Shown: positions 15,546 to 61,119 of the stretch, piece by piece
Layout of the letters: each line of letters begins with the position of its first letter
How positions within the stretch are numbered: the stretch's first letter is position 1
DNA from: Syncephalis fuscata S228
Taxonomy: Eukaryota > Fungi > Zoopagomycota
Assembly: GCA_025786725.1 (NCBI GenBank)
Contig: JAHLTZ010000015.1
Span: 496,001 to 560,000 of the forward strand
DNA length: 64,000 nucleotides
Direction of reading: 5' to 3'
Notes under the pieces: generated by a model
The model's database searches: none
Seen by the model: the letters and a program-made list of their open reading frames with translations, nothing else
What the model was told of the DNA's origin: nothing
Translations under genes and position numbers: made by a program

Positions 15546-16618
15546 AACAATTACAATTAAATGAAATAGCAATAACGAGAAAGAGATATGTAAAATGTAT
15601 GTGATACAATGTTAACTGATTTAGTCTTGTTCTAACATGACCGCTAAAGATTGGTTCAATATGGTCTTACACCTTCAACTTGATTTATTCGTTTAATTAT
15701 ACTGGATATCTAGTTTAAGCAGGATATACATGCTATTATTAAATTCAAATCAAGACATAATAATAAATCCCATTAAATCCAAGAATAAATGACCTATTCA
15801 ACCATGCAAATGATAACATATTTGTGTACTTTATCAATTTGCTAACTTGCTTGCCATATAGTATGTGTTTTATAAGTTGGCATACTAATGCAACTGCTAA
15901 AATATCCAGATAAGACTAATATAAATCTATTAACGAATAAAGAACAAGTCAGCGGCAGTTATGCGTTACCCAAAGATTAGTTTTATTAATGTAGTAATAT
16001 TTTACTGTTTATTTAGTTAACAGTAGTATTAAATGACTGATCATGCAGTTCAATCGGCAATAATTGATTTTTATTATTATATTAATTTCAAGATGAATTG
16101 CAATGAATACAAGCTAATATTATTTCGGTATTATTCATAATATACTTGTAAATACAGTCGATTACAATGCTAGCATGTATTTATAAACTTCAGATTTTAA
16201 ATCGTTATTTAAATAACAATGCTATTATAATCACTTTAGTTTACATTGTTCACTAACATAGCGTATTTTTACAAGTATATTGTCAATATATTTAATCAAT
16301 TAATGTTAGTCTTTGTAAGCAAATAGAATATAAACATAGCTATAATAGCTTAATCAAACACAATTAAGATGGAACCACATGTTTATTACTACAAGTTTGC
16401 ATACTTGATTGCATACAAACAAATACAGACTTGTTGGTAATATAAGAAATCCATCGATTAAGGGTTGAATAAACCAGGGCATTGGCTGGGACTTGGTAGC
16501 TGAGTGGGCTGAGTGGTGTAGTTGTCAAATGATCTTGATTCTTGCCGAATATATACCTAAAATATATATAACTCGCAGTCCAATCATACTATCAGTGCCA
16601 ATATTTTGAATGCGCCAG

Positions 16619-18507
16619 TTATTCTATAGTCATGAGCACATATAAAATATTATATGGTTAGCGTATGAGTTAGCATTATATGATTCTACTTACAATCTAT
16701 TAATACAAGGCATCAAACACGTAAAGTGTACAGTATATATTTAATGCATCGTCAATAATATACAGTATTACTTACGAGCTATTAATACAAGTCATCAAAC
16801 ACAAAGAATATGATAGTTGTTTAACGTATAGCCAATTAATATACAATGCCACTTACATTCTATTATGTTAAGTTATTGATAAGCACAATACAAGTATATA
16901 ATTAGTGTATAGCCAGTTAATATACAATACCATAATTGTTAAGTGAAACCCCCCCCCTCCTGTTTTTTAGGTAAAACAATATGCAAGCCAGTTTAAACAA
17001 GTAGGTCCAAAAACAAGACCTTGGCCAGAATAGCCAAGGAAAAACAATTGGGATCAACTTCAAGAGAATAGTGCTGTGTAGCACCATTCAAAAAAAAGAT
17101 GGTCCCGCATGAGATCTATATGGACCGGATTTTGCGCAAAAACGTAGCAGTCCACCCGTTAAAAGTTTGGAAAAGTCCAAAAATAGTGGGAAGCAGCGCA
17201 AATGCTTTAATTATGTGCAGCGGGGGCTCACAAGCTTTTCAAAATAAAATAAAAATATAATATAATATTACTTACTGCCTATTAATAAAAGTCATCAAAC
17301 ACGCAAAATGTACGGTATGTATTTAGTGCATAGTCAATTAATATACAATAACACTTACCCTCTATTAATACAAGTCATCAAACACGTAAAGTGCACGGTA
17401 TATGCTTAGCGTATAGTCAATTAATATATAATACTACTTACGACCTATTAATACAAGCCATCAAACACACAAAATGTACAATATATGTTTAGTGCATAGT
17501 TAATCAATATATAATGCCACTTACCAACTATTAATACAAGTCATCAAACGCAAAAAGTGCACAGTATATAATTAATGCATAGTCAACTAATATACAATAC
17601 TACTTACAACCTATCAATACAAGTCACCAAACACACAAAATGTACGGCATATGTTTAGTGCATAGTCAATCAATATATAACATTACTTACCAACTATTAA
17701 TATAAGTCATCAAACACACAAAGTGCATGGTATATATTTAGTGCATAGTCGAGCAATATACAATGTCACTTACAAGCTATTAATACAAGTCATCAAACAC
17801 GCAAAGTGCACAGTATATATTTAGTGCATAGTCAATCAATGTACGATATCACTTACGAGCTATTAATACAGGTTATCGAACACACAAAGTGCACAGTATA
17901 TATTTAGTGCATAATCAATTAATTATTACTATTGCTATTTACCTCCTATTAATACGAGTAATCGAACACACAAAGTGCACAGTATATATTTAGTGCATAA
18001 TCAATTAATTATTACTATTGCTATTTACCTCCTATTAATACGAGTAATCGAACACACAAAGTGCACAGTATATATTTAGTGCATAATCAATTAATTATTC
18101 TTATTGTTATTTACCTCCTATTAGTATAGATAGGCAATGTTAGTATCAGCAATATAATTTGTTTTATATTAAACCTACTTTTAACCAATGGTGCTATTTT
18201 ATTTGTTTTACATTAAAAACAACAATTAATTATTATGCCAATAACTATGTGCAATCAACAATTACCATCTATTTGCCATGTCCATTATTTGGATAACATA
18301 CGATAAGCGCTGGAATAATGAGTCAATAATTGCGACTTACCATCTAATATTATCATTGGTTAAACATAATGTTAGCAAACATTTCAAATTTCAAATTTAT
18401 GACTACAACATACCACGACGAACCAAAGTTGGCTTAGCATCCACCATGGCTGTACTGGCTACAAGGGCCACGAGGACGGTGCAGACGACGGCAATAGAAA
18501 GCTTCAT
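16619..18507 (-). CDS. Micro-exon-encoded secreted peptide precursor, copy A (19 exons, 16 of them 3 nt): MKLSIAVVCTVLVALVASTAMVDAKPTLVRR-DDAPLVKR-GGAPFGFGQGKSH
   Basis: Exon 1 at 18507-18414. 3-nt exons at 18341 and 18266. 15-nt exon at 18179-18193. 3-nt exons starting at 18115, 18029, 17943, 17857, 17774, 17691, 17608, 17525, 17442, 17359, 17276, 16857, 16776 and 16694. Last exon from 16623 (AATAA). Every exon is bounded by AG|...|GTA. The spliced frame stays open for 52 codons, then TAA TAA. Confidence 0.8.
16640..18120 (-). repeat. Tandem array of 83-86 bp intron + 3-nt exon units
   Basis: Unit consensus (minus strand) GTAAGTRGTATTRTATATT...ATGCACTAAAYATATAC...TTTGTGTGTTTGATGACTTGTATTAATAG-NNN. 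Exact 83-bp spacing over 17276-17857 and 86-bp spacing over 17857-18115. Confidence 0.95.
16933..17255 (+). mobile_element. SINE copy lacking the tRNA-like head, inside an intron of the micro-exon array
   Basis: Aligns to the body and (TAAAA)n tail of the element at 44948-45342 but lacks its first ~70 nt. Degenerate AATATACAATAC-like flanking duplication. Confidence 0.7.
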
Positions 18508-18644
18508 GGTGAGATTGATTTGTTAAGACAAACAAGTAGAGTGAACGACAGAGTATGTCAAGTGCAAAGTAGGCAGAGTGAGTATTTGGCAGAAAGCAGA
18601 ATGTGATGATGATACTGCTGGTTAGTTGTGTGTATTTTGTGGGC

Positions 18645-18652
18645 TATTTATA
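18645..18652 (-). promoter_or_regulatory. TATA box (TATAAATA) of micro-exon peptide gene copy A
   Basis: About 140 bp upstream of the ATG at 18507. Identical context (ATATTAATATAAATAGCCCACAAAATACAC) in copy B. Confidence 0.55.
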
Positions 18653-18877
18653 TTAATATTTATTTTGAAGCACCAGCAATGTATCCTATAGAATATACCA
18701 TTGAATACAGTGTAAACCAATAAAATGTATTGATATGACGATTTAGCAGGCATGGATGAATAACTGTAGTGTGCATTCTATACGTGCAATGGTAGTCTTC
18801 AAAGGTATTCACATGATGATTTGAAGTATGCGTATAGCAATGTACTAATGACATGCTAATGTGCAACCATGCCCTTG

Positions 18878-19630
18878 ATTCAACCTGTTTGGCTTTTGCT
18901 CAGATGACGCGGCGAACCTAACCACCTGGTACATCTATGGTAGAAATTTGTGTACTATTCTTTACAATATCGTACATGGTTTGAACATGTAATGCAAACC
19001 AAATCCATTGATTCTATAGAAGCAATAATGATACGCCTTTGTGTTCTTGCTATTGCTTTTACCGAAAAATTAATCCCCAACTTGACCGTAAGATGCAAAC
19101 TGAAACAACTGGTTCTACAGAAATAATGATGCTCCGTTGTTGTTTCTTTACTTTAACCTGCTTACCATTTGCACAAAGGACCCGACAATCTCAATCATTC
19201 AGTACACCTATGGTAGAAATTCGTGTACTATTCTTTACAATATCGTACATGGTTTGACCATGCAATGCAAACCAAGTTCATTGATTCTATAGAAGCAATG
19301 ATGATACGCATTTGTGTTCTTGCTATTGCTTTTACCGAAAAATTAATCCCCAACTTGACCGTAAGACGCAAACTGAAACAATTGGTTTTACAGAAATAAT
19401 GATGCTCCGTTGTTGTTTCTTTACTTTAACCTGCTTAACATTTGCACAAAGGACCCGACAATCTCAATCATTCAGTACATCTATGGTAGAAATCCATGTA
19501 CTAATATTTACTGTACTGTGCATGATTTGACCATACAATACAAACTGAGTCTATTGGTTCTATAGAAGCAGTAGTAACACAACAATGTGTTTTGCTGTTG
19601 CTTTTACCGAAACATTTTAATCCCCAATAT
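18878..19630. repeat. ~273-bp tandem repeat (about 2.5 copies) upstream of peptide gene A
   Basis: TACAYCTATGGTAGAAAT recurs at ~18930, 19203 and 19476. The duplicated ORFs at 19039 and 19312 are 273 bp apart. Confidence 0.9.
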
Positions 19631-20139
19631 TTGCATCCTTTCAAACTGCGCATAACTCGTAAGATAGTGCATTGCCTTTGAACAAACCCCGATATAATCT
19701 TTTTGTGGAATTAGGTCTGTTTTGACACCAAACTGCATTCTCTTCATTTTATAGACGACTACAAGGTTTATTAATAGTCGGTAAATAAAAGCTATTTATT
19801 ATTATTTCAAACTGCACAACACATATACAAAAGCAACATTAATAAATTGAGTTTCTTTACATACCTATAATGTTGTGCATAAGCCAGTTACAATGATTAA
19901 ATCGTGCAATATATTGGTTGGTTCATGTGACCATTCTACTTGCCATTGCAGCTTAGCTACAAAAATTACCAATTTATTTTTAGCACTGTCTTACTAATCA
20001 TTGATACAGGCCTTATCGCTATCAGTCAATTCCTGTTATTAATTATTGGCTGCTGCGTAATGGTATTCCCGATAATGAAGCACTAAACTCGAGTATTAAT
20101 GGTATATTACTTAGTGGCAACACTGATATACAAGCAACT

Positions 20140-41290: not shown

Positions 41291-42628
41291 ATGTCAGCAC
41301 CAGAAAAAAATATCATACTGACGACGGATGGTCAGCCATCCAGTCTAAGCGAGCCACCGCCAAAAGCCTCAATATGGGCATATTTTCGTTCTCCTCAGTT
41401 TATTAAAGCGCTGCTTCTTGGTCAATTGCTATCGCTCTGTATTACAGGAAGCAATACGTCCACGACCAAGTTGGCGCAAGAATATAATGTTAACGCGCCT
41501 ACCATGCAATCTTGCCTTAACTATATACTTTTGGCGCTAGTCTACAATATATGGATTCTGATAAAACACGGTGGTCGTCATGGATTAATGTTTTATATAG
41601 CCGTGGGTGGAAATGTAGACATCATAGCTAGTGACTAGTTTGAGCTAATTGTTTTTACATAACAACAATAACAACTAACTAATAATTTAGACTTAATTTT
41701 AGGAATTGTCGACGTTGAGGCCAATTATTTTGTTGTAAAAGCATACCAATATACGTCACTCACCTCGGCCATGTTGCTAGACTCCTGGGCAATTCCCTGC
41801 TGTATGATTCTTTCATACTTTTTCCTAAGTCGTCGATACCGCTGGCTTCAATATGCCGGTGTGCTGCTTTGCCTGGCTGGGGCCGGCCTTTTGTTCAAAT
41901 CGGACCTTGAGGCTGATCATGACTATCCTGCACAAGATGCACTACGAGGTGATTTATACTGTATTCTTGGTGCGACGCTTTATGGTGTATCCAATGTCCT
42001 TGAGGAGAAACTGGCCCATACATACGAGATAACCGAAATTATTGGTATGCTAGGCTTATCGGGCGCAATAGTAAGCGGTATCCAACTATCAATACTTGAG
42101 CGAAAAGAACTATCAAGTATGACATGGTCTGGACCTGTCGTGGGCTATTTGCTTATGTTTGATATCTGTCTGTTTTGCTTGTACTCGTGTGCACCGCTTT
42201 TATTCCGTTTGTCATCGGCTACATTTTTCAACATGTCGCTACTTACCTCCGACTTTTACAGCCTTATTGTCGGCTTAATTATCTTTAATGCTAAGGTAAT
42301 TTATGTGGATTACTTTGTAACTTGATACTAATACTAGCTCCAGATTAACTTTTGGTATGCAGGCGCTTTTATTGCCACTGTTGCAGGCATATTTGTCTAC
42401 AACCTACGTAATGCGGAAGAGTTATCAGCAGTTAAAAAAGCTTCTGAGTCTGAAAATGGACCGTTGGAGCCGTCCAACAGTAAAGCCAGCGACGCAATTG
42501 AATCAGAATCAAGTAATGCTAATTTAATTAATACAAGTCACGCACACGATATGTCCAGGACGCCGCCCAGCACCGAATATATTTCGCTGGCAATACAAGA
42601 TGAACCAGAGACTATACAGCAGAAATAA
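41291..42628 (+). CDS. SLC35F (DUF914) solute carrier (apparent frameshift near 41572)
   Basis: LLGQLLSLCIT, APTMQSCLNY, DVEANYFVVKAYQYTSLTSAMLLD, GATLYGVSNVLEE, SSATFFNMSLLTSDFYSL. Confidence 0.9.
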
Positions 42629-44310
42629 TGTGTTTATGACTTTAGACCGAAATGAATTGCGAGAATAGTAATATCCAGTTGTGATTAGGATAGAATGTGA
42701 TGGTTTTTATTGCATAAATGGCTGTTTTGCTTGTTGATTGCCAATGTGTTACTGTGTTGATTACATCATTACTGTCTATTAAACATTGCTTATGATCAAA
42801 CTAATTGTCTATGATTTGTTTAAATATATTTGATATATTTCGTCACAATAATCGTAGATCATAATTAATCAATTCTATTAATTTAAATTATGTGTCTAAA
42901 ATAAGTAGCATTTTTTGCTACAGATATGCATACAAATTTATTTTAGTATTTGCAAATAGCAAATACCACATAAGTAAATTTTATTAACATATTGCACATT
43001 CGTATTATTTATTTTAACAATAATATAAATATGTATAACACCAGTGACAAACAATAGATATAGTGTGTATATTAAAATGATTAATGAATAAATTCTAGTG
43101 TCTTTACATTACTTTATGATTAATCATCAACATCAATACTCGAGTCCAATGCTTCATTATTAGGAATACCATTACGCAACAGCCGATAATTAATAACAGG
43201 AATTGACTGATAGCGATAAGACCTGTATCAATGATTGGTAACACAGTGCTAAAAATAAACTGGTAATTCTTGCAGTTAAGCTGCAATGTCAAGTAGAATG
43301 ACCACATGAACCAATCAATATATTGCATGGTTCAACTATTGCAACTAGCTTATGCACAACAGTGTAGGCATGCAAAGAATTACAAGTTCAATTTATTAAT
43401 GCTGGTTTTGTATGTGTTGTGCAGTTTGAAAGAGGGATAAAGTAACTTTTATTTACCGGCTATTAATAAAACTTGTAATCATTTATAAATCAAAGAGAAT
43501 GTAGTTTGGTATCAAAACAAAACCAATTTTATAAAAGATTATATTGAGATTTATTTAAAGGCAATGCGCTATTTTGCGAGTTATGCGCAGTTTGAAAAGA
43601 TGCAGATATTGAGGATTAGAATGTTTCGGCGAAAGCAGTAGTAAAAGCATAAAGATGTACCACCACTGCTTCTGTAGAACCAATAGATTTAGTTTGTATT
43701 GCATGGTCAAATCACGCACTGCACAGTAAAGACTAGCATGTGGATTTTTATTATAGATGTACTGGATGATTGAGATTGCCGCGTCATCTGAGCAAATGCC
43801 AACAGGCTGAAGTAAAGATACAGCAATGGAGCATCATTATTTCTGTATAACCAATGGATTCAGTTTGCGTCGTACGGTCAAGTTGGGGATTAATTTTTCA
43901 GTGAAAACAGTAGCAAAAACACAAAAATGCATCGTCACTGCTTCCATAAAACCAATAGATTTGGTTTGTATTGCATGGTCAAATCACGCACAGCACAGTA
44001 AAGACTAGCATGTGGATTTCTATTATAGATGTACTGGATGATTGAGATTGCCGCGTCATCTGAGCAAAAGTCAAACAGGCTGAATTAAAGGCTTGGCTGC
44101 ACATTAGCATGTCATTAGTACATTGCTATACGCATACTTCAAATCATCATGTGAATACCTTTGAAGACTACCGTTGCACGTATAGAATGCACACTACAGC
44201 TATTCATCCATGCCTGCTAAATCGTCATATTAATGCATTTTATTGGTTTACACTGTATTCAATGGTATATTCAATAGAATACACTGCTGGCGCTTCAAAA
44301 TAAATATTAA

Positions 44311-44318
44311 TATAAATA
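44311..44318 (+). promoter_or_regulatory. TATA box of micro-exon peptide gene copy B
   Basis: TATAAATA about 140 bp upstream of the ATG at 44456, conserved with copy A. Confidence 0.55.
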
Positions 44319-44455
44319 GCCCACAAAATACACACAACTAACCAGCAGTATCATCATCACTTTCTACTTTCTGCCAACTACTCACTACTACCTACTTTAT
44401 ACTACTAAACTCTATTGTCTATTTTACTTGTTTATCTTAACAAATTAACATTACA

Positions 44456-45580
44456 ATGAAGCTTTCTATCGTCGTCGTCGTCTGCACCATTGTCGTGGCC
44501 TTTGTAGCCAGTACAGCCATGGTGGATGCTAGTCCAGCTTTGGTTCGTCGTGGTATGTTGTAGTCATAATAAATTTGAAATTTGAAATGTTTGCTAACAT
44601 TATGTTTAACCAACGATAATATTAGATGGTAAGTCGCAATTATTGACTCATTATTCCAGCGCTTATCGTATGTTATCCAAATAATGGACATGGCAAATAG
44701 TTGGTAAGTTGATTGCACATAGTTATTGGCATAATAACTGATCGTTGTTTTTAATGTAAAATAAATAAAATAGCACCATTGGCTAAAAGTAGGTTTAATA
44801 TAAAACAAATTATATTGCTGATACTAACATTGCCTATCTATTCTAATAGGAGGTAAATGACAATAAGAATACTTAATTGGCCATTTAATTAAATGCTGTT
44901 TATATTACCAAACTAGCACCACAAGATGGTAAGTAGTATTGTATATTATTTTATTTTATTTTGAAAAGCTTGTGAGCCCCCGCTGCACATAATTAAAGCA
45001 TTTGCGCTGCTTCCCACTATTTTTGGACTTTTCCAAACTTTTAACGGGTGGACTGCCACGTTTTTGTGCAAATCCGGTCCATGTAGATCTCACGCGGGGG
45101 CCATCTTCTTTTGAATAGTGCCACACTGCACTATTCTCTTGAAGTTGGTCCCAATTGATTTTTCCTCGGCTATTCTGGCCAAAGCCTTGTTTCCGGACCT
45201 ACTTATTGGGTTCTGGTTTGCAATTTGTTAACTAGAAAAAACTGGGAGGATTTCTACTTAAAGATTGATTTAAACTAAGGTTTAAACCCGGAACCTTCAA
45301 CTCGGGAAACGCTACCTTACCTACTGGGCTAGTAACGCTCCCGTAGTATTGTATATTGATTGAATATGCACTAAATATATACCGTACATTTTGTGTGTTT
45401 GATGACTTGTATTAATAGGCGGTAAGTAGTATTGTATATTGATTGACTATGCACTAAATATATACCGTACATTTTGTGTGTTTGATAATCTGTATTAATA
45501 GAAGGTAAGTAGAAGCATATAATGCCAACTCATACGCTAACCATATGATGTTTATATATGTACTCATGATTATAGAATAA
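44456..45580 (+). CDS. Micro-exon-encoded secreted peptide precursor, copy B (9 exons): MKLSIVVVVCTIVVAFVASTAMVDASPALVRR-DVAPLAKR-APQDGEE
   Basis: Exons 44456-44552, 44626-44628 (ATG), 44701-44703 (TTG), 44774-44788, 44850-44852 (GAG), 44917-44928, 45419-45421 (GCG), 45502-45504 (AAG) and 45576-45580 (AATAA). All introns are GT-AG, phase 1. Open 47-codon frame. Confidence 0.8.
44948..45342 (-). mobile_element. tRNA-derived SINE (395 bp) with a 15-bp target-site duplication
   Basis: Perfect TSD GTAGTATTGTATATT at 44933-44947 and 45343-45357. 5' head with A-box TAGCCCAGTAGG (45331-45320) and B-box-like GGTTTAAACC (~45288-45279). 3' (TAAAA)n tail. Confidence 0.8.
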
Positions 45581-46739
45581 CTGGTGCATTCAAAATATTG
45601 GCACTGATAGTATGATTGGACTGCGAGTTATATATATTTTAGGTATATATTCGGCAAGAATCAAGATCATTTGACAACTACGCCATTCAGCCCATTCATC
45701 TACCAAGTCCCAGCCAATGCCCCGGTTTATTCAACCCTTAATCGATGGATTTCTTATATTACCAACAAGTCTGTATTTGTTTGTATGCAATCAACTATAC
45801 AAACTTGTAGTAATAAACATGTGGTTCCATCTTAATTGTGCTTGATTAAGCTATTATAGCTATGTTCATATTCCATTTGCTTACAAAGATTGCAAACATT
45901 AATTGATTAATATATTAACAGTAGACTTGTAAAAATGTGCTATACTAGTGAATAATGTAAACTAAAGTGATTGTAATAGCATTGTTATTTAAATAGCAAT
46001 TAGTATTTAATTATTTACAAGCATATTATAAGTACTAAAATTATCATTAGTATGTAGTCATTATTACTTAATAAAGTCGCCATTTGATTAACACAAACCA
46101 CTACTAAATTACTGCTTATTCACGAACGATATAGATTGTATATAACAACGTTACTATATCATTTGACTTGAATGTATGCAATGTTGTGAAATAGATACTG
46201 TATCATTGAACATTGTATAATTGGCACTTTTATGTTGGCTATAATGTTATTCAATTTAGCTAGTTAAACAATTGTATATTAAATGGACTGAGTGTGCATA
46301 CTAGTCAATGATACTGCTAGAGACAAAGAATATTAAGTGGAAAAGGAAGCAAGATGGATGAAAATGAACAGTGAATGTCATTGGAATGAATGAACAACGC
46401 AAGTAGTCGAATATCACTAATCAATATGCTGTAATTAAGTATAAGAAAACGGAAACACTACATTGTAACTTCAATTAATCACTTGTGAATAAGTTCTTCC
46501 AAAGTAAATGTTAATAATTAAAGCAATCTTGTATTATTCATCAGCTCAAATAAAAATAACGAATTTTTTTAGACTGTTCAAATACATATACTATATTAAA
46601 GTAAATAATTGTATGTAAATAATTGTAATAATTTGATTGGATTAAACTGTGTTTAAATCGTTATTCATAATAAATATTAATGTAATATCATTATCATTTC
46701 CATAAAGTAGAATTAAATGTAACATGACATTGTATTAGT

Positions 46740-48113
46740 AATAATATTAAACATTTAAATAAATAATGTAACATGCCATTTGACTAATTTGAAACATTTG
46801 AGATTAATTATTATTGTTATTGGCCATGTGTAGAAAGATTGATTGATATTAATAGAAATCCTTGATTGCAATTCCATGTCATTCTGCATTTGTTGTTATT
46901 GCATCTACGTACAGCATGAATTCCTGCATCCAAATGCTTTCCTGTATATTTTAATATTCTGCTATTGCATTTTAAGCATATTTGTGATGTAAGATCAATA
47001 TCAATATAATTATTATAAAAGTCGTTTATTAAACAACCACTTTTCCTATAGCCAATCTGACTAAATGAAGGACAATATATTTATATTCAAGCAATAATAA
47101 AGATAACTATTTAATCACATTATTGTATTGATAATTACACATGAATTAATTAATATTAGTGCAATATTATACATGAAATATTAATAAATAAATGTTTAGT
47201 TGTGTCTAAAGCATTAAGAAAAAGAGTGTGAAATGGGTAAATAAAGATTGCAAAAGTCAAATTACAATAGTTTACTAATATTCAATAATTGCTAAGTAGA
47301 CTCATGTGATTCAGTGTCAAAAAATCAAGGCTAACATCCTTTACTTGATTGAACTACGCATTTATTGTCCTACTAGACATGGAACTGGATGGTAAGTTAT
47401 ATTAAATATTTAATTATAATGCTTTGAATACTTTACAGCAACAATAATATGGATTAACATTTATTAGCATATACACTAGCGCATAGTCTCTACCTATTCA
47501 ATTACTTAATAATAAAATTCCACTTATTGCTTTTGGAGCTGCTCGATTTGCCACTTCTATGAAAGGCAAGGTTGCTGGACTGGCCAATCGTTACAGAAAT
47601 GTGCTTAAAACTGCTGAGCGACAAGAACTTTTGGTGATTGCAGATATTGATGAATACAATACATCAAAAGTCTGTTCCAAATGCAAGAAAAAGGAGATGG
47701 CAGGGTTATATCTGGAATAACACAACAGCACAATGCATAGCGTACTTGTTTTTCCAAACAAAAATTGCTGTACGGTATGGCAGTGTGATGTTAATGCTAG
47801 TAGAAACATGCACAGTATATTCAGTACAATGGCCAGTGGTGCACCAAGGCCTTCTGATTTCTTACCACCTATTAGTATAAGAAATCAAACTGACACTATT
47901 GTATCAACATCATAATCAAATGTAGAGTTTTATTGTAAGTAGCATGAAATACTATTTAACATTTATTAATACTAATATTGGATATTGGAAATAGTGCAGA
48001 TTGATTAAGACACTGATTAATTCAATCGGAGTTGATGTGGCACTGCTTCAACAAACCATTTCTCAGTAGTAAAAACGGATCGACAGCTTATTGTTTGAGT
48101 TATCGACCTTTGT
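46740..48113 (+). mobile_element. Decayed Fanzor-carrying element
   Basis: Repeat-family 5' part shared with 30800-31510, a Fanzor coding remnant, and a conserved 3' tail. Confidence 0.65.
47514..47915 (+). pseudogene. Fanzor (eukaryotic TnpB-like RNA-guided nuclease) C-terminal fragment: RuvC-II, zinc finger and RuvC-III
   Basis: One frame reads KIPLIAFGAARF...IDEYNTSKVCSKC...*...HSVLVFPNKNCCTVWQCDVNASRNM...PRPSDF. This matches the Fanzor/TnpB pattern DExxTSxxCxxC...CxxxW[NQ]RDVNA. In-frame TAA at 47718. Confidence 0.8.
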
Positions 48114-51100
48114 AAATAGTTCGTGTACCAAATATATCCGAGCCAAAATATTCAGCCGCCACTGAAAAGCCATCATCGGATCGTTCAAGCTAAATACGAT
48201 GTATTAGTATGTCAAATAGCCATTTTAGAATAATACACTTACTTCTTGATAGAATTGTGTATGGCGTTTACTAAGTTCCTCATTGCGTTGATGCATTTCT
48301 TGTATACGTTCAAGTTCGGGTGCGCATTTAGGACAACGAGCATCCATACTGCCGCCAGGAAGACACCTAATTCATTCCATTAGCAAGATTTAAGTACAGT
48401 AATTGTTCACATACCGTTGATGATAAGAGTGTCGACACATAAAATGAGCCACTGGTAAATCTAATGCTCCAGAACAACCGGAGCAGCGGGTTACTTGAAA
48501 TACTCGAATACTGTTGTACATAAGAAATGAGTGCTATAATAAACTAAATACAAATTAATAGTTACCCCTCGTTTAACTCGGCCAGCTCGTTCTTCTTTCG
48601 TGTTGTCTCTTCTCGGCACCGTCTAATATATGCTTCATCCTATAATAGATTATTAATACAATGATTGTATCTTGCCCATCTACTCACCTCCTCTTGCTGA
48701 TGTTGTTCACTCTCTAATCGTGTACACAAAAACTCACGAATCATACCAACAGTGGTGGCCGAGTTACGACACAATAACTGAAGTACTTTTAACAATGGCA
48801 TTAAATTCTCTTGATCAACGCGTTTCATTACTATACGCAGCATTTCTGGATGAGCCGATAACACCGATGGATTATCCGCCAAATAGGTCAATATAAGTGT
48901 ATACAACGAAACATCCTTGGACCTAATAACATTATTTAAATATCCTTTTTGCAATATATTGCTATTTAACTTACCCGTATTGATCAAGTGCCTCCATAAT
49001 CTTCGTAACATTTTCATTACGCATCCAAAACCGCATAATCTCATCGTACATTTCACGTCGTTCGTAAATAATAACTTGGCCTTGATCAAAACCAGCCGTA
49101 CGACATAGAATCAATGCATGATCCAAATCCAATGGAATCTAAATAAAAATAACACCATTTTAGCTTAACCCATCGCTTGTTAATCGTAGTTACCGTAGGA
49201 TTATTTAGCATGTCTATGGCACGTCCAGTTCGTCGATCGTTCTCTTCTTCCACATCTTCATCAATGCGCTCACATGGTGTTAAATAAAGCTCAAGTAATG
49301 TGCCATAGATCAATCGGCGCTCATCCTCATCATCTTCCTCTCCACCAGGCCATCTTCGTGCGGCAACCCCCTCGAGGAACTTGACCAGTGCATCATTATT
49401 ACCGGCAAATGCTCCAAAGAATTGTCGAGGTGATGGTGCATGTACAGGTTGCTTTGACGGCAATGTCATAGGCGATTTGCTATTGGACTGACCACGTAAA
49501 GATGTCTGTGGCGTATTGGCCATATTTGGACTATAAACAGTCGGTAGATTAAATCCAGCTGCTCCTTGCGGCTCATCCTTCTTATCTGAAGAAGGCGAGG
49601 AGCTATTATTCTTGCTATTCTTATTATTCTTGCTATTCTTGGTTGGACTCAATTCCCCAGTACATAATTCGACTAACAATTGAATAGTTGGATCTGGTAA
49701 ATGTTCCAAGAATATTTTGGCATATTGTCTCATAAATTGATCAATCTTAAAAGAGTTAATATTAATCCATCATCATTATTGGTAATAAAAATACTTACCT
49801 CATTGGTGGGTAGAGTGTAAATATAAGCAAGTGCCTCTGAATAACGTTGCACATTATCAACCAGTATCTTTAAATGTCTAATAAATCATCTATAAGTATT
49901 ATATACTATTAATAACGAGTACTCACGTTGTATGATCATTAAACTTTTTAGTTAAATGAAGGGCCAAATCGTAGTAGCCACCTCGTCGGCAAACCCGAAT
50001 AGCTGTTTCAACATCAAATTGCACTGTATCCGATTCAGACTAGAAATAGAATAAATATGAGTCATTTATCCATATATATATATATTATATTCTGCTATAA
50101 CCTACTTTGATAAATTCGGCCAGTTTTTCCGCATCATTCAATTTGGTATAGCAATTGATTAATAGTGTTGTATGATCTGCTGTAGCATATCCACGTTTAT
50201 GCAATTCTTGAAGTAAGCAGTCAAGTGACGAATACGCTGTGCATCCAAGAACTAGATTTATTATAGATTATAATTAGCATTGTAGCCATTTATTTGTAAT
50301 AAGCTATTTACCTTGCGAACAACATAAGATGGTTCCAAATATCCAAGTGTTTTTAAATATTGAGTCATTGCGCCATCATAGTCACCTTTACTATGAAGAT
50401 GATCACCGTAACGACGTATATTTGAGCAATTGATTCTTGATTATATCCAGGTGAACGGCGAGCCAATGACACAGCCAATACATATAGATGCTGTTTAAAT
50501 AGGGCATCCATTTTAACGGATGTTTCTTGTTCTTGTAGATAATATAACTGCAAACGGATTAATAGAATATAAATATTTTAATGTTACTATTTACCTTGCC
50601 ATTATTCGAAATAAGAAATAGACCGCCTGAGGCTGTCACAGTGGCTCTTATACCGCCACGTACTTCATCTGAATATGCAATATACTTTTGTAATGGATCA
50701 AATAGTGTAACTTGTGTATTTGAACTATCATCATAAAGGATTACCAGGTAAGTACCATGCCAAATAACTGTTGTCTTTGGCCCTATATCATTATTGTTAT
50801 TATTGTTATTATTGTTATTATTGCTATTGTTAATACATATTCAAATAAAATGGATCAATAGTAAGATAAGCAGCCATACCTTCAAATGCATAACAAGGAC
50901 CACGACCCTCTGGTGTATAAGAGTAGATGGCTTCTTCTCTTCCGAGTACAAGGTCACCGCTGGCTGTATTCAATGCACCACATCCAAGTGCACAGCCATG
51001 CTCATCAATGACCTGTCGCTGTTCCTTGGCTGTTGTAGTATTGCATACGATAGTCTTTGCTAATGTAGTAACATACAAAAATATCTCACTACGACGCTCA

Positions 51101-51989
51101 TACAGAGCAACACCTAATAATTCAGTTGTATATAAGATACATAATTTACTAGAATTTATATTCTGATTACTTACCGGTAACCGGCTCTTCACTAGACCAA
51201 GCAGTGCGCTGTTTTGGACTTCTATCCTTAAGAAGCTGTCCTCGTAGCACAACTACTCGTCCATCAGCAAACCCAAGTGCAATTTGTGTCATATTCTCTA
51301 GAATATCAAATGCGGTCACCTAAATCATAAATAGTTAATATATTAGAAGAACTGCCGCTGTTACTATATAATAATTACTGGATAAGTAGTGCTGTTTCCA
51401 CTCTGCTGTACACGAATTGTTTTCAATAAAGTTGGATCACCATCTGGTAGATTTTTACGTAATTTCCATATACGAATTGTGGGCGAATTGCCCGAGCCAA
51501 TTTCTTCCTACAACGATGAATCAACATTTAATTTAATTTAATTAATTTGTATGCAACAACACTACTTACACTTAATGTTACTAATCGACCTTGTCCATCC
51601 AGTGATTTGAGATGTGTTAAACGCTCTTCATCTTCAGAATGAATGGCAAATGAACGCACATCCAATCGTCGATCTACTAAATACATCTCGCCTCGCGAAG
51701 GTATCTGATAGCAAAGAATAGCGTTAAGTATATATCAAATCATGTTGTTTATCATGTTTGTACGGTTAGTCACATAAAGGATATTGCCTAGACAAATGTA
51801 ACCTTTACATTGGACTACGCCAACCAGGTCAGTATCCTACATTAACAGCAACTGTTAGCATGAATGATAGCCATAGTAGCTATAACAATTTACGGTAAAG
51901 CAAGTGGGCGGTTCTTCTATCTCATCTCGGTCAAAGAATTGAAAATGTCTCCATTGAAATGGCCGACTAGGTACACTTGTAGTAATCAT
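48100..51989 (-). CDS. VPS11: HOPS/CORVET core subunit Vps11 (many introns; apparent frameshifts near 50415 and 50212)
   Basis: QWRHFQFFD N-terminus, YGDHLHSKGDYDGAMTQY, FLDAQRI, HTTLLINCYTKL, FDVETAIRV, and C-terminal RING CSGCSGALDLPVAHFMCRHSYHQRC...CPKC. Confidence 0.93.
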
Positions 51990-52283
51990 GATAAAGCACT
52001 TGCACTATCAACTAGAGAATAGCCACTTAATAGACAATAGCAATAGACAATAGCAAGAGTGATGAGTGTTAGTATGAATAAAGTAGTTATGGTTGTAAAG
52101 GTAAAGATGACGACAACAATGTTAGTTGAAATACGAACACAGAAATGTGTCAACAGTGGATAATTTGGTGTAATTGATATACAGTAGCATTGTCATGGGA
52201 TTTAATTGCTGATTTTTTAAACAATTCTCTATATTTTATTTTTCATTTAATTGATTGCAAGATTCATATATTATTATAGTGCT

Positions 52284-53237
52284 ATGGAGAATAACGAAAC
52301 CAATAAGACATGGCCTAGTGGTCTAATAATGGTTAAGGAGTTTATTAGTCCAGAAGAAGAGGAGGCACTTATGGCAGTTATTGATAAACAGCCGTGGTCG
52401 GGAAAAGGTATTGGGTATGTACATGGCTATGTAAATAGTGCTGCTTTATATTAACACTATTGAATAGAATTAATCCAGAAATGCGACGCCGAACACAACA
52501 CTACGGCTATGAGTTTAGCTATTCAAAACGGTAATAATAATAAAAACTGTAGCAGTAATATAATAGCTATGTATCAACGATCCATTAACGGTAGTCCAGT
52601 AAAGTAATACGATTTATTGATGATACGCCGATGCCGAGCCAGTTCTCCACCATTCTAGACCGTATTGTTAACGATCCACGACAGCTATGGCAACCAGAAT
52701 GTAGCCACTTGGAAGAAACGTGTAATAGTGAACATAATCGATGTCGACTATTTCATACTACTGGATTGCCACCAGATAGTGTTATTGTTAATGAATATGA
52801 AAAGGGGCAAGGTATTATGCCGCATACCGGTAAGTGTATACTATTCTATTCATTCATTCATTTATTCATTTGTTTGTTTGTTTGCTAATTTAATTTGTTC
52901 TAGATGGACCTAGTGCATTTGGACCGGTTGTAGCCTCGTTATCTTTATTATCTGACTGTTTATTTACATTCGATAATCCAGCCGATCCAGAATATACTTT
53001 ATCCATTAAACTACGTAAGTTGTATATGTTTATTGATTAGTACAGTTTACTAATAACCGGATTCATATAGCCCGTCGATCGTTGGTTATTATGCGTGGAT
53101 TTACACGTTACCAACTACGACATGGTATTGCCAAGAATTTAGTTGAATTCCACAACGGAGAAACAATAGACCGAGGTCGACGTGTGTCATTGACTATTCG
53201 CCGTATTGGCCATTATGGCTATAATATTACTGAATAA
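52284..53237 (+). CDS. AlkB-family 2OG-Fe(II) dioxygenase
   Basis: GLIMVKEFISPEEE, RRRTQHYGYEF, VNEYEKGQGIMPHT|D (HxD), RHGI, RRVSLTIR. Confidence 0.88.
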
Positions 53238-53521
53238 ATAATTGCATGTTTGTTATCATGAAACGCGACTACACATGTCGTGTGATCTTATCGTCATTGC
53301 TATTTTTAATTTGAGTACAGCTGAGCCTTTGCACACTTCTATAAATATTCTCTACGAACCAAGTAGTTATTGGTTTTAGTTTTAATATTTAGTCGGCGTC
53401 ACTCACTCACACGTTACCCATACGCTTTCCTTCCTTTTCTCCTTCACAATTCATTCAACTGTCTAACGAACAGTAGCAGTACTTGGTATTTTGCAAGTAA
53501 TTACCGATACCTTTTGAAGCT

Positions 53522-54720
53522 ATGGACAATCGTCCACTACCACCTGGCTGGTAAGTAATTGGTGTTGGTATAGAAGCATACTTACAGTAGAATAGGATAA
53601 GCCAATTCGATCAAGGTAGCAATCGGTATTTTTATGTTGGTAAGTACAGACATATATTCAGTATTAAAAATATAGATATTGATATGGTTATATGTGTTTA
53701 TTATGTTTAATAGATACTGCTACAGGACAGTCGTCATGGGATGATCCACGACCGGCATTCTATGCTGCTCAACCACCTTCGAGTGGTCATAGTGCCACAC
53801 CAGTAGGCAATACGCCTTCTGGTATGCCAATGAGTATGCCCAATGCTGACGATTCAGCATCACCACCACCCGCCTATCCAAATATGTCTGGTCCGGGCTA
53901 TCCACCAGCTGGACCGTCACATAGCAATACAAATGGCAATTCATCGTCGGAAAAGACGTCGTATCCTCCTGCAGGAGCTCCACTTCAAGGAGGTCCGCCA
54001 CCCATGCCTGGCTATGGTACTAGCGCTACACCAGGCTACGGCGCTCCTCCTGGATATCAAGGAGCAGGAGGAGCAGGACCGTCAGGCTATGGCACACCAC
54101 CACCACCTCCGGGCCAACAAGGCTATGGTATGCCACCAGGACAGCCAGGCTACGGTGCACCACCGCCTCCTCCGGGTCAACAAGGCTATGGTATGCCACC
54201 ACCAGGACAGCCAGGCTATGCGAGTGAGCCTCAAGCTAATGCTTATTATGGAGGTGCTCCTCCACCTGCAGGCCAGGCTGGAGCCGATGCAGATAAGATG
54301 GGCATGGGCAAGATTGCCGGATTAGCCGCTGGTGCTGGTGGCATTGGTCTTCTTGGCAGTATGCTTGCTAATAGCAATAAACCACACGGTAGCAGTGGTG
54401 GTGGTGGCTTTATGGGCAATATGATGGGTGGTGGCCATAATCAACACGGTAGCAGTGGTGGTGGCTTTATGAGCAATATGATGGGTGGTGGCCATAAGCC
54501 ACCAAAGCCGCAAAAACCTTCTAGCGGCGGTAACTCGCTAGCTATGGGTGCCATGGGTGTAGTAGGTGGCGGTGCACTTGGCTACGCGGCCGCACATATG
54601 ATGGGTGGTGGCAAGAAGCATAAAAAGCATCATAAGCACAAGGGCTGGAAAGGATTCAAAGGCAAAGGCTGGAAGGGATTCAAAGCTAAAGGCTGGAAAG
54701 GATTCAAAGGCTGGAAATAG
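53522..54720 (+). CDS. WW-domain, Gly/Pro-rich protein with a basic KGWKGF-repeat tail
   Basis: Spliced N-terminus MDNRPLPPGW|ISQFDQGSNRYFYV|DTATGQSSWDDPR is a WW domain. GYG/PPP repeats follow. Confidence 0.85.
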
Positions 54721-55605
54721 TAGTGAATTACCATTATTGTGTTATTAATCTATGTCATCGACCTGATACATAATGTTAATACATTATAGTGTGTTGTTTG
54801 TTAATAATATAATATGATATTCCACACTTAATAACAACAATTAATACAAAAACGTTGTTGATTATTGGTAATAAATTTAGTTTAATCGTTATTAGATGAC
54901 ATTATTGTGCAAAGTGTAATTTTTGATTGTCAACACCATTCATTTAATTCATTGTAGACCACAAATACATGTTTGCACACACAAAATAAAGTATAATGAT
55001 CAGTTTAACACATCCTTAATAACATCGTGGAAATGACCACAAGAGTACGACAATTAGATCCAACAAATAATGAATACAAAAGAATAGACAGAAAAAGAAT
55101 AGACATTGCCAATAAGACACAAAGTTGCTGCTATTGCTATTGCCGTGTATCGATATCGACATAGCTATACAATATGAATGCCATGTCCTATCTTTCTATC
55201 TTTCTATCAATGTTTACACTTTGATAGGCAATCATTTAATTGATCGATTGAAAGAAAAGATAAAGGATAGGATTGGACTATGACAAACATAAGTAGTAAT
55301 AGTCGTTGTCAGCGCTATCGTTGTACTGATTGCACTTGCGACATAGGCAATAGCAGCAGCAACTGTATATGGTTAGGCAACTACACACGCCATGGAAAAA
55401 ACAAGGTAAATGCGGTGGTGTTAGATTAGAGAGACGTGTACGTATAGGTATGTATATATGAATGACGTGTTCAATGTCAGTTCTTTATCTATGCTTCTTT
55501 CCGCTATTCCCGTATCGTTCTTCTAGCTGGTATCGTCGTTGTTGTCACTCTTGTGGTCACGGTAGTTGTTGTTGTTGTTCACAGTACACATGGTGTGCTG
55601 CTAGA

Positions 55606-56665
55606 TTAGCAGCAGCCACCGCCACCTTGTTGGCCGATTGTTTGGCCTGCGCCCACCTTAACCGTTGATTTGCCTGCTTGATTTGACATCGTTTGGCTGC
55701 CCATTCGGTCCTTGATCTGCTTGGCCATGGTAAGGAAAGCTTGTTCGACGTTTGTAGCATTTTTAGCCGATGTTTCAAGGAACGGAATGTTAAGCTGATC
55801 TGCGCAGTCCTTGGCCGTGGCATATTCAACCGCCTTCTTGCCTTCGAGATCGCTTTTATTGCCCACTAGAAGCTTGTTAACACCTTCACATGCATAACGA
55901 TCGATTTCTTGCAGCCACTGCTTGACATTGGTAAATGTATCGGCATCGGTAACGTCATACACGACAATGATACCATGTGCACCACGGTAATACGAACTGG
56001 TAATTGTACGGAAACGCTCCTGGCCAGCAGTATCCCACTATAGTTGTCATAAATATACGTGTTATTGTTAGTTAAATGTCCATGACAACTGCCATGTTTA
56101 CTAGCCGTTTATAATTAATCACTTACAATCTGCAATTTTACAGTCTTGCCTTCAAGTTCAATGGTACGAATTTTCTACACAATAAATGATTGATTAATAA
56201 TTAGATCTAGTCAACTCATACCACATCGACATGCTTATAGATTACACTATTCAAGCTGCTAATAACTCTGACTCATCAAACAAACTACTTGATCTATTTA
56301 CTTACAAAGTCCACACCAATGGTACTAATATAGCTCTCTGTATAAGTGTCATCGGCAAAACGAAGCAATAGACAGGATTTGCCCACACCAGAGTCACCAA
56401 TAAGCAAAAGCTTAAAGAGATAGTCGCTAAATAATAAATATATATATAAATATTAGTAAATAATCATGTAAATAACGTCTAATTTAATAGAGTAACTGTG
56501 TAAGTCAACAAGCCACTGGTCATTTCATCCAATAGCTACACTTGTACTAGTTCTATTACTAGTACAAGCATATATACAGATTATATATATGGCCATTTAT
56601 CTTAAACAGATTACTCGTATAGGCCCAGCGCATTAGACTATTTATACTTACTATTCGGGGTTCAT
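55606..56665 (-). CDS. YPT1: Rab1/Ypt1 GTPase
   Basis: MNPEY|[72 protein letters not shown]-terminal CC. Confidence 0.97.
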
Positions 56666-57914
56666 ATTGTCGTAGTGGAAGTGTTAAAGGCGGTAGACTA
56701 GCGGATACTTTTGAAAGTAGACTGTAAATAGCGGTAACACTCACTATGTTCAAAGGCAGTTGAGAAAAGTAGAAATAACAGGATGCGCACACAAACACAC
56801 AAACAAACAGCGCGTTGATAATCCAATTCAAAATGAGAATACAGTCGGTTATTGACAGCAATCGAGCGCCAAGAGTAAAAGTGATGAAGAGCGAAAGATG
56901 AACGAAGGAGAACAAAGTGTGTGTGTATGAATGTTGATGTGGATGTAAGTGGGTCGGTTGATTAGCTGCTATCTTTCCAATAGTCAGTTCCCATTATCAA
57001 TTTAGACCAATCATTGATCATTCTGGCGTCATCCATTGCACCACTCACCCACACACACACACCTACACGCCTATATGCGTACACACACTCAATTTTATCA
57101 ACGACTACTATATGGCTATATGCATATATATATTCATATAGATATATTTCTATCTATCTAATATATATATATATATTGCTACATATATATATGTGCTTAG
57201 GTAGAGAAAAAAGTGATATCTATCTACTTTTCTTACTGCTTTACTAATCGTTTACAGCATAGCTCATCATGGATATGCATATATTATACCATTTCATACC
57301 ACTTACCTAAACTGTATTTTTAATATAGATACGATTATCACGTAGAATATAGTAGTAGACAGTAAACAAATAAGCACAAGTATATCCGTATAAGTAGTCA
57401 CACTAAGATGGCAACTGTAGAAACAATAAAGATGTAAGTGATTTAGACTAGCAATCACAAAAGTTAAAGGTCAATAGAACGAGGATGAAGACGAAGAGAC
57501 AAATAGAATGAAGAGTCAAGGTAAGCAGTAGTTAAAGTAGTAGAAATAGAAGTAAAAGTAAAAGTAAAAGTAGGAGTAGAAGAAGGGAGAAAGGGTCAAT
57601 TGAGGAAATATTTATTAGTAATAGCATTAACATACAGACTATTAAATAGTTAAAGGATGATTAAATCAATAAATGTGTAATACAGCTGTGTCAGTCATTG
57701 TTACATCATACAAACGAGTGTATAAAAAGGGGACCACGTCCTTACTGTCCTTTATTTATTAAAAACAATAAATGCTAGTATGCTACTAGGAGAGAAGATA
57801 GAGAGAGTGTGTGTGTGCGTGTGTGAGTATACTAAGCTATAAAAATATCGTATTTTGCTTTTTCCATTACGTTGTTGTTATACTTGTCGTTGTCACGCCG
57901 TTAATATATTACTA

Positions 57915-58843
57915 CTACGTGCTTACAGCATGTACAAAGCCGGCCAAGGTACGCGATGCATATCGCAGTATTTCTCGTCGAAATAACACTTCAGTCGCTA
58001 CATCATCGGCCAGTTCAATGACCCATTCTGTAAGACTGGGTGATAGGCGCGGTACTGCACCAAGATTAACCGCTGAGGGACTCTGTGTTGGATCAACAAT
58101 AATTTCGGAACAGGATCGTTTAATAGCGGCAAATTCCAATTCAACACGTGAGCGATATTTATCAAAATGCTGACCGGCTTGACCAAGACAGTGGTAGAAT
58201 AGCGCGAGTTGATGCGCTACATACTTGTGATTGGGTAGTCGAAGTGAATCCTTTAGTTGCAATGAAATGGCCACCAATTGGTGCATAGTAGACATACGGG
58301 CAAAATGATCTACACACAGTTACCATTACCGTCGATAATGAGTAAATATTAAATACTGCTGATTATCATGTGACTCTCCTGCTTACCACGAATTGTTGAA
58401 GAGCGATCTTGGTCGGTTGTAGAGGACAGGTCCTCAATGCCTAACCGAGTGGCGGCTTTAGGAAATAGAGATGCTAGACCCACTTCTGTAATATAGGTCT
58501 ATATCAATAGAAAGATTGTTAGATGAATAAACTACGCTGGATGCTATTTACTTGAATAGAACGGCCTGCCTCATCATGCTGCTCTACAAGTGCACGCAAC
58601 GCGGTCGATAAACGTACTGTCTCGCGTTCTTCAACAGGTGGTTGCTCTTGGAACACCGTTTCAGCCGACTGTTTGCTAGTGATTAGCACGAGATGTCTGC
58701 CTATATACACGCATATAGCCATTTACCTGCTCTTGTTGTTCAAGTCGCATAAGTGCTAGTTCAAGATCGGTCATCAACGATAACGCTTGAAAGCCTAGAC
58801 GCTTTCTCTTAGATGCCGGTTTCACTACTAGCGGGTCTTGCAT
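57915..58843 (-). CDS. Hypothetical protein (4 exons)
   Basis: Coding-like ORF pieces joined by GT-AG introns. No family recognised. Confidence 0.55.
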
Positions 58844-59222
58844 ATGCGTTTCAACTGAAAACACCGAATGATTGGTGGAGGTTCATATGGGCAGATAGCC
58901 CACTTACCCGCTACTACATTGTCCACGACACCATGGACGCTGACTAAAGGCATACTATTTGCTAATTTACTCATCTTGCTTAATACACAAAATATTGGAG
59001 GAAATAACGAGGATAAGAGCGAGCGAGAGCGATAAAGAGAGAGAAAGAGAAAGAAAAGGAAAGGACTGTGACGTGATTTGCTGCCAAGAACTTGTTCAAA
59101 AGTGAATCATAAAACATGCTCCATAGATAGATTAAAGCGATAACGATAGATTGATAGACTGGCACTCAAGAAATAGATCACCGTGATGGTGCATAAGGTA
59201 GAGTAACCCATGGTATTAATAA

Positions 59223-61119
59223 TTAATTACTATTATTATCAGTATTATCGTCATTAATAACCGATATAGATACAACGGAGTGGGCTGTTTCTTGTGATGG
59301 TGGTGGTGGTAATGATACGGGCGGGGAAGAGGAATTATTTTGTTCTTTAAATGCTGTAATGGCTGCAGTATAGGCATCACTAGATTCAATATCTTGCGCG
59401 ATACATAATAATTGACGTAGATTTGAATTCTCTGCTTGTAATTGTGCACGTTCCAATTGTTCTTCATCATCGAGGGCATATTGCGTGTGTACAGCATATC
59501 GAACTCGATTGCCAAGTCGATCGAGTGCCGTTTTTAGCCTAGTCATTTCTTGATCCATAATCATCGTGCGTTTCTATTAATAAAATACAATTATTTGATT
59601 AGTGTTTTAATTTCATTTCATTTTATCAACTTACTTGTTCTACTAAAAGAGCACAAGTATGAGCACGTCGCATTTCACCCATAGCATGTTGAACTGTAAA
59701 CTATTCAATTGTTAGTATATATTGTTGTTAGATGAATGTATTATTTACTTACAGTTTGTGCTCTAAATCGATCCATGATTGTTTCGAGTGCTCGTTCATG
59801 TTCTTTTACAATACTAGTGAGTTCACGTGTCTCATCCTCTAGTAAACAATTTCGTTGTCGTAATCGAGTATTTTCCATTTGTAGTTGGTCTATTTAATGG
59901 ATTCATTCGTTTAATCACTAGTATATTAATTAATTTAATTATAACTTACTTATTTCGGCCGGTGTTGGTATGAAGGCTGATTCCGTATGCTGTAAGTTGT
60001 TGGCCATGACTGTAGTCTGGTTACTACCACCAACACTACCACTACCAATACTGCCATTGATATGGACTACAGATGGTTGACGAGAACGCTAGATGCAAGT
60101 TAATAAATACTATTGCTATTATGCTATAATTGTCCCCCTACCACCATGCACTGATCGGCTCTTCGTCGTAAATCGTCTAAATTACGCTGATTTCGTGATA
60201 GAAATGACGATAATTGTCCCGTAAGATGCCATATTTTATGCATATTTTTGTCATCCATTGGTTGAGTGGTTGACGTCGTTGGGATACTTTTACTACGTTC
60301 ATGGCCATTATTAGGTGATTTTGCCTCTGTCTTAGTAGATTTGGGTGGTGAATTTGTTGCCACGGCAGTTACCATCGATGCATCTGTCTTAATACTCGTA
60401 AGAGGTGCTGATGCAGTTGCTGTAATAGCCGATACTTGAGCAATAGCACTATCCAATGTCATATCTTTAGTCGGTGATGTGGATAAAGATGTACTAGTAG
60501 AGGTTGACACACTATGTTCACTAGACAATAGAGTACTATCTACACTATGTTCACTGCCACTATTGCTACTAGCATCACTATCTTCGTTAGTGGCATTATT
60601 TGTAGATAAAAGTATATTGGGTACAGTATGCATATCCATATGATCATCCGATGATGTTGGTGATGGCAGGGCAATAGCGGCCATGGTGGTTGTCGGTGTT
60701 GTTTGTGACGAGTCGTCAATAGTATGACTGTCGTCAGAAGGCGTAGAAGTAAAGAATGTCAATGTTGCTGGTTTGTTTGACGCGTCAATCGCTGTAGTTA
60801 TTCCTATTGGTACATCAGCGGTGGTAGTAGCGGTAGTAGAAGTAGGAGTAGTAGAAGTAGTAGTAGAAGCTGCTGCTGCTGCTGCTTGTGCTGCATTACG
60901 CTCATCCGCTTCTACTGCTGTCCGTACCGATAATGCAGCAGATGTTTTACTCGAAGTAGAAGGTGATATAGCACCAGCTGGTGTTGCATCGACCGCTGTC
61001 ACAGGTGCAGCAGTTGTAGTAGCAACTACAAGAGCGGGATTACGCTTTGCATTGGACCGTTTACGTCCATTCTTGCGCCGTCCCGACGATCCAGTATTTG
61101 AAGACTGAGATGAAGACAT
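59223..61119 (-). CDS. SIKE/FGFR1OP2-like coiled-coil protein (probable STRIPAK subunit) with a long S/T-rich N-terminus
   Basis: ETRELTSIVKEHERALETIMDRFRAQ and AQLQAENSNLRQLL resemble the SIKE/FGOP2 motifs ENxEL..LEEHQ.ALELIMSKYR and LxxENxxLRxxL. Confidence 0.65.

Follow-up and report, generated by a model that had tools for sequence, protein, structure and literature searches.

We analysed a 64,000-nt stretch (the window) of the genome of Syncephalis fuscata, a member of a genus of obligate mycoparasites (PMC13188720). Its minus strand carries a gene whose predicted mature coding region is split into a long array of 3-nt exons. Exon 1 (18414-18507, minus strand; 94 nt) is conserved in 20 loci and encodes a putative signal peptide and a short pro-segment that runs to Arg-Arg, a candidate Kex2-type site, followed by one further nucleotide; because this exon is 94 nt long, every array intron is in phase 1. 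The first 3-nt microexon, ATG at 18341-18343 (minus strand), has strong splice sites. It is followed by a possible second ATG microexon at 18266-18268 (minus strand), whose inclusion is uncertain as its donor is the weak GTAATT, where several paralogs carry GTAAGT. An apparent 8-nt exon at 18309-18302 was left out of the gene model since it would shift the frame.

Further along the minus strand, splice-motif calling found 14 units of the form YAG-NNN-GTAA(G/A)T, spanning 18117-16694 and located at 18117, 18031, 17945, 17859, 17776, 17693, 17610, 17527, 17444, 17361, 17278, 16859, 16778 and 16696. In order of transcription, these are three 86-bp units with the triplet GAG (17860-18117), which are 93-97% identical; eight 83-bp units, each an 80-nt intron plus a 3-nt exon, with the triplets CTC, CTT, TTG, GTT, TTG, GTC, AGG and GCA (17276-17859); and the last three microexons AAT, CTC and ATT (16694-16859). 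Ten of the triplets are distinct. The array introns measure 78-83 nt, with the sole exception of a 416-nt intron that holds an insertion. The terminal exon starts at 16623 and extends provisionally to about 16200 (minus strand); it opens with NN+TAA, which completes the last codon and adds the stop, and continues into a 3′ tail that is conserved by homology across the family.

A sequence-only reading of the window had described 14 units with ten different trinucleotides between 16694 and 18117, all in phase 1, and each of these descriptive statements was confirmed, although that span omits exon 1, the microexons at 18343-18341 and 18268-18266 and the terminal exon from 16623. Its contrast between conserved introns and variable exonic bases was likewise borne out: among the seven core units, per-column diversity is 0.81, 0.52 and 0.81 at the three exon positions, compared to a mean of 0.185 and a maximum of 0.71 for intron columns. 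The tandem units are detectable by TRF as a minisatellite, and the array introns show no conserved secondary structure (z from -0.7 to +1.6). If all exons are joined in order, the chain is predicted to read (D)DGGGAPFGFGQGKSH. The public annotation misses the microexons of this gene: model KAI9595475 takes the acceptor of the first microexon and runs on into the next intron, so that the array is left unannotated.

The insertion in the long intron, which follows the GCA exon, is a 5′-truncated SINE-like element on the plus strand (16935-17255, ends approximate). Full-length copies with 15-bp target duplications are found at ~44930-45340 of the window and at locus L041. These elements are 330-410 bp long, lie antisense to the gene and end in an (AAAAT)n tail, and the full copies have a tRNA-like head with A and B boxes; ARAGORN and Rfam gave no match. 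In four arrays (both family members in the window, L041 and L049) the element sits ~19 nt past an array-intron donor, and these four insertions at the same unit position are probably independent. The second family member (44456-45580, plus strand) has the same leader, about 6 microexons, a different peptide and a full-length SINE-like insert.

The gene lies in a duplicated cassette (16200-20101) comprising the gene, 1.6 kb upstream and 0.4 kb downstream, of which a 98.4% copy with an identical exon chain is present on the large contig C179. The upstream region duplicated along with the gene (18508-20101, minus strand) includes a 273-bp tandem repeat at 18929-19627. This repeat also occurs upstream of the second family member (43075-44090), and its copy number varies among paralogs. 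The ends of the cassette are fairly sharp; it also occurs as an inverted pair on contig C57 (at 418k and 475k), and near-identical inverted pairs are also found on C1. In Syncephalis plumigaleata, whose ortholog of a neighbouring kinase shows 76% identity, the syntenic 22 kb hold no array, but synteny is broken just at the second family member, which sits at an inversion-type break (window ~42400-60300 versus L051).

Genome-wide analysis of the assembly (29.4 Mb, 371 contigs) showed that such candidate exons are not restricted to this locus. The strict AG-NNN-GT pattern occurs at 3,593 sites with 3-nt spacing, compared to 196 sites at 4-nt spacing, 180 at 6-nt spacing and 114 for the reversed pattern. 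The ~18-fold enrichment over 4-nt and 6-nt spacing is far above chance. As the strict pattern recovers 66% of the curated units, the genome would hold ~5,000 candidate microexons, duplicated and haplotype copies included. The genome-wide search with unit and exon 1, which the sequence-only reading had proposed, returned at least 35 loci for the array query and 317 first-look candidate leaders for the exon 1 query. S. fuscata probably has hundreds of such genes. Only ~20 public models carry the family leader, versus the 317 candidates.

We read 20 of these hundreds of array loci, which hold 6 to 51 units each and for which the public protein models contain no chain matching the arrays. In 18 of the 20, exon 1 is in phase 1; the remaining two, L032 and L034, carry a stop or a 1-nt deletion within exon 1 and have intact arrays; they were left uncorrected and are either pseudogenes or long-read assembly errors. 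The NN+TAA terminal exon follows the last microexon by 69-72 nt in 18 of the 20 loci, with variable NN. Of the two loci lacking this call, one ends at a contig end and the other has a further uncalled unit. A hydrophobic leader, judged by eye to be a signal peptide, is conserved across 13 aligned loci, and Arg-Arg stands at the end of exon 1 in most loci. Additional dibasic sites inside the arrays are not enriched (5 versus 3.6 in shuffles). Searches for homologs of the leader or the C-terminal peptides outside S. fuscata found none, all leader matches being S. fuscata proteins.

Genes that have the same leader but lack introns altogether also occur. Their annotation is that of secreted peptides, Cys-rich (in several cases) or Pro-rich, and those at C240:2662-2775, C157:436190-436351, C68:511361-511483, C212:183174-183311 and C1:523643-523882 encode Cys-rich or longer peptides. 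Two of the intronless paralogs, P0139 and P0140, continue into the 3′ tail of the family. The idea that the annotated Cys-rich members are microexon models built from RNA was rejected, as each mature part is encoded in one uninterrupted genomic piece; for P0125 a contiguous match was not found, which is uninformative by itself. The intronless paralogs may either derive from spliced array mRNAs by retroposition or represent the ancestral state.

Are the triplets coding? Units were called by splice motifs alone, ignoring frame, and coding tests were carried out on 15 non-redundant genes with 343 microexons, which are 3 or 6 nt long and without exception phase 1-1 as predicted from the DNA. Read in phase 1, these contain no stop codon. 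None of the 328 adjacent in-order junctions creates a stop, compared to 8.3 expected from shuffling the exons of each gene (P about 5e-5), and removal of the largest gene still leaves 0 versus 5.0 expected (P=0.001). In addition, mutual information between the final base of one exon and the opening two bases of its successor is significant at distance 1 only (P=0.002), and T or C fills the middle base, the wobble position of a phase 1 reading, in 282 of 341 microexons, a bias whose T component could stem from splicing needs rather than codon choice. Because the paralogs are related, the P values are optimistic; the signals are nevertheless independent in kind. A phase-0 reading is also stop-free and was rejected, since it clashes with exon 1, with the NN+TAA terminal exon and with the order test. 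Neither CAG nor TAG occurs among the 341 microexons, though GAG and AAG do, which may reflect avoidance of a competing acceptor before the donor or merely of A-ending codons. Outside the family, a housekeeping kinase in the window contains a predicted 8-nt microexon (7978-7971, minus strand) that encodes part of the HRDLKPEN catalytic loop and lies between two 62-nt introns, suggesting that the S. fuscata spliceosome copes with tiny exons.

Comparison of units and paralogs revealed extensive turnover at the DNA level. In pairs of units within a gene whose flanks differ at no more than two sites, exon triplets show 0.41 differences per site. Intron triplets held out in the same way reach 0.14 per site at most, with a median of 0.03. 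Loci L046 and L031 differ at 2 of 94 leader bases and 2 of 257 tail bases, compared to 18% of array intron bases and 21 of 57 microexon bases; between the window gene and L035, one of 94 leader bases and 25 of 42 aligned microexon bases are different. Thus, in these two pairs leaders that are 98-99% identical precede microexons that differ at 37-60% of their bases. Across paralogs the ends of the arrays are conserved and the middles diverged. Whole-unit indels are found among paralogs or haplotype copies of the one assembly, in which array size ranges as given above: L043 and L044 are distinguished by a clean 162-bp indel of two units plus one lost donor, and L047 and L048 by three-unit blocks. 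Single exons also drop out through splice-site mutation, as in L033 and L032, where one acceptor is lost, and weak donors and acceptors are present.

These data support the DNA-level route to peptide diversity put forward in the sequence-only reading, given near-identical leaders in front of different arrays, the gain and loss of whole units, and a divergence of exon triplets well above that of intron triplets. Its view of the GAG units as a recent expansion also fits: the three 86-bp blocks differ pairwise at only 3, 3 and 6 positions, and the close paralogs L035 and 44456-45580 in the window have one such unit where the window gene has three, which adds two Gly. Unequal crossover was proposed to add or remove one residue at a time; whole-unit gains and losses are indeed seen among paralogs, but the steps often comprise two or three units. 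Across the arrays, 46 different triplets are in use. Judged from the DNA, the diversity appears to lie mainly between hundreds of genes, with none shown between isoforms of one gene.

The same reading had also regarded exon skipping as a source of a peptide library within each gene, and on this point the junctions argue otherwise. In such a splice-level combinatorial library, comparable to schistosome micro-exon genes (MEGs), exons would often be skipped and many peptides with deletions and hybrid codons would be made per gene, this diversity being the function. Skips would preserve the frame, as every exon is symmetric (phase 1-1); every single-exon skip in the window gene stays open and many alter a residue; weak donors and acceptors exist in the arrays, and alternative splicing is reported to be used in this way by schistosome MEGs (PMC4350168). 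If skip products were a selected output, however, skip junctions should avoid stops. Instead, 11 of 313 single-skip junctions in the 15 genes carry one (7.9 expected), and all forward non-adjacent junctions (127 of 4587) do so at a rate like that of backward pairs that can never be joined (141 of 4915; P=0.8). As stops occur here at chance rate and are purged from in-order junctions, only the full in-order product shows signs of selection. The example given of CTT followed by AAT creating TAA is correct, but this junction requires the skipping of six exons, and no single skip produces a premature stop in the window gene. Moreover, some arrays spell ordered peptides, such as the Cys-patterned L050, whose spacing would be ruined by skipping. 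We thus consider a splice-level library unlikely. A premature stop may cost little in so short a peptide, which would permit skipping as a secondary effect; skipping as the purpose of the array design would be no more than a logical possibility. We are similarly doubtful about a two-level diversifier acting at residue resolution, in which codon-wise rewriting by intron recombination would be combined with frequent skipping and hybrid codons, and the intronless paralogs would be retrocopies fixing successful products.

That the real signal exon is followed by nothing but a non-coding minisatellite or a selfish, intron-like repeat, with 3-nt "exons" as chance by-products that are never included, seems very improbable to us: such a repeat would account for the TRF-detectable units and for an annotation that reads through the introns, but not for stop avoidance that depends on exon order, the invariant AG and GT, the wobble-type bias of the middle base, the conserved NN+TAA terminal exon, or the higher variability of exon triplets than of any intron triplet. 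More difficult to separate from adaptive diversification is a non-adaptive origin, in which an intron unit prone to duplication left the arrays behind, the peptides evolve under ordinary purifying selection with none of a diversifying kind, and the exons appear hypervariable only because the introns are homogenised. Exon differences between nearest units often involve two or three bases together between near-identical introns, which would fit a reshuffling of exons between homogenised introns. A like pattern has been reported for SmPoMuc (PMC2576457), and the intronless paralogs do without arrays. On the other hand, among units that agree at codon position 2, the wobble base differs at 0.05-0.07, near the intron rate of 0.02-0.04, compared to 0.33-0.43 for codon positions 1 and 2, and very recent gene duplicates already hold different peptides. 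The roughly ten times faster change at positions 1 and 2 would fit positive selection, on small samples from one assembly in which the wobble base may itself be constrained. Diversifying selection, as proposed in the sequence-only reading, is thus one of two readings of the exon differences, the other being intron homogenisation with selection keeping old differences; as an account of the family as a whole, we regard the non-adaptive one as rather improbable.

The explanation we favour, and hold to be probable, is a family of secreted pre-pro-peptides whose in-order 3-nt exon arrays are diversified by recombination between near-identical introns, with selection acting on the full peptide. From the architecture, family size, coding signatures and unit turnover seen in the assembly, we infer splicing, processing and function as follows. 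Tandem duplication of one intron together with three exonic bases would, most likely, have produced the first microexon without a frameshift, between a conserved exon 1 with its signal peptide and Arg-Arg and a conserved terminal exon with NN+TAA and the 3′ tail; array growth by further units of ~80-nt intron plus 3-nt exon keeps the frame. Each array intron would be spliced by intron definition, and the selected mRNA would hold the exons in order. The near-identical introns would serve as recombination handles around each codon, so that unequal crossover and gene conversion could add, delete or swap one to a few residues and homogenise the introns, and splice-site mutations could remove single residues. 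Selection would purge stop junctions and keep or favour amino-acid differences. The product is probably secreted, trimmed at Arg-Arg and active on host fungi or competing microbes, its most likely role being that of peptide effectors, antifungal or antibacterial peptides, or signals at the mycoparasite-host interface.

Conserved signal and pro regions combined with a hypervariable, sometimes Cys-rich mature peptide are typical of pre-pro-peptide families of the venom type, conotoxins and spider toxins among them, and the S. fuscata family shares this division into a conserved leader and a hypervariable, sometimes Cys-rich mature part. We know of no microexon arrays in venom-type families; Atlas leads to such peptides scored 0.80 or less, below threshold, and gave no evidence of kinship. 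Schistosome MEGs are described as flatworm-restricted, with about 35 genes, exons of 3-81 bp (mostly 15 bp) and introns of 0.1-5 kb (PMC4350168; bioRxiv 10.1101/2023.06.21.545858), and alternative splicing is documented for them (PMC4350168). Like these, the S. fuscata genes belong to a parasite, encode a putative signal peptide, have a fast-evolving mature region made from very short symmetric exons and were missed by automatic annotation; in the 15 genes, the predicted mature coding region consists mostly of tiny symmetric exons, as in MEGs. In contrast to MEGs, nearly all exons are 3 nt long with every codon split over two of them, the introns (most of 76-81 nt) are homologous copies of one ~80-nt unit, and the family is fungal with probably hundreds of genes. 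We found no sequence homology to MEG proteins.

In SmPoMuc, an exon and its flanking intron are repeated in tandem, the introns being homogenised by gene conversion or unequal crossover and the exon differences kept by selection; the unit of ~1 kb has a 27-bp exon, and 6-9 genes with few exon types encode a mucin repeat (PMC2576457). Coccidioides SOWgp is cited alongside it as comparable (PMC2576457). Tandem exon-intron repeats, homogenised introns, divergent exons and variable repeat number, here among paralogs and haplotype copies of one assembly, are shared with the S. fuscata family, which differs in its ~83-bp unit, its 3-nt exon, its 46 triplets and its arbitrary, non-repetitive peptide. 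A mucin product, a 27-bp exon and homology to SmPoMuc are lacking, and no match was found outside S. fuscata. Judged by sequence, the family would work like the SmPoMuc repeats and resembles MEGs as a member of neither family. A literature search, with most subscription journals outside its coverage, found no report of microexon arrays in Syncephalis or other fungi. The array is a genuine and very unusual feature, and the family an extreme and independent form of micro-exon and exon-repeat gene.

If spliced as predicted, up to 51 consecutive 3-nt exons per gene, and about 5,000 in a 29-Mb genome, would make this an extreme gene architecture and a natural test system for a spliceosome that joins exons below the footprint needed for exon definition. 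The family would also illustrate how coding sequence can arise codon by codon through the duplication of an intron, and it brings to light a mycoparasite's large set of predicted secreted peptides, which annotation has overlooked.
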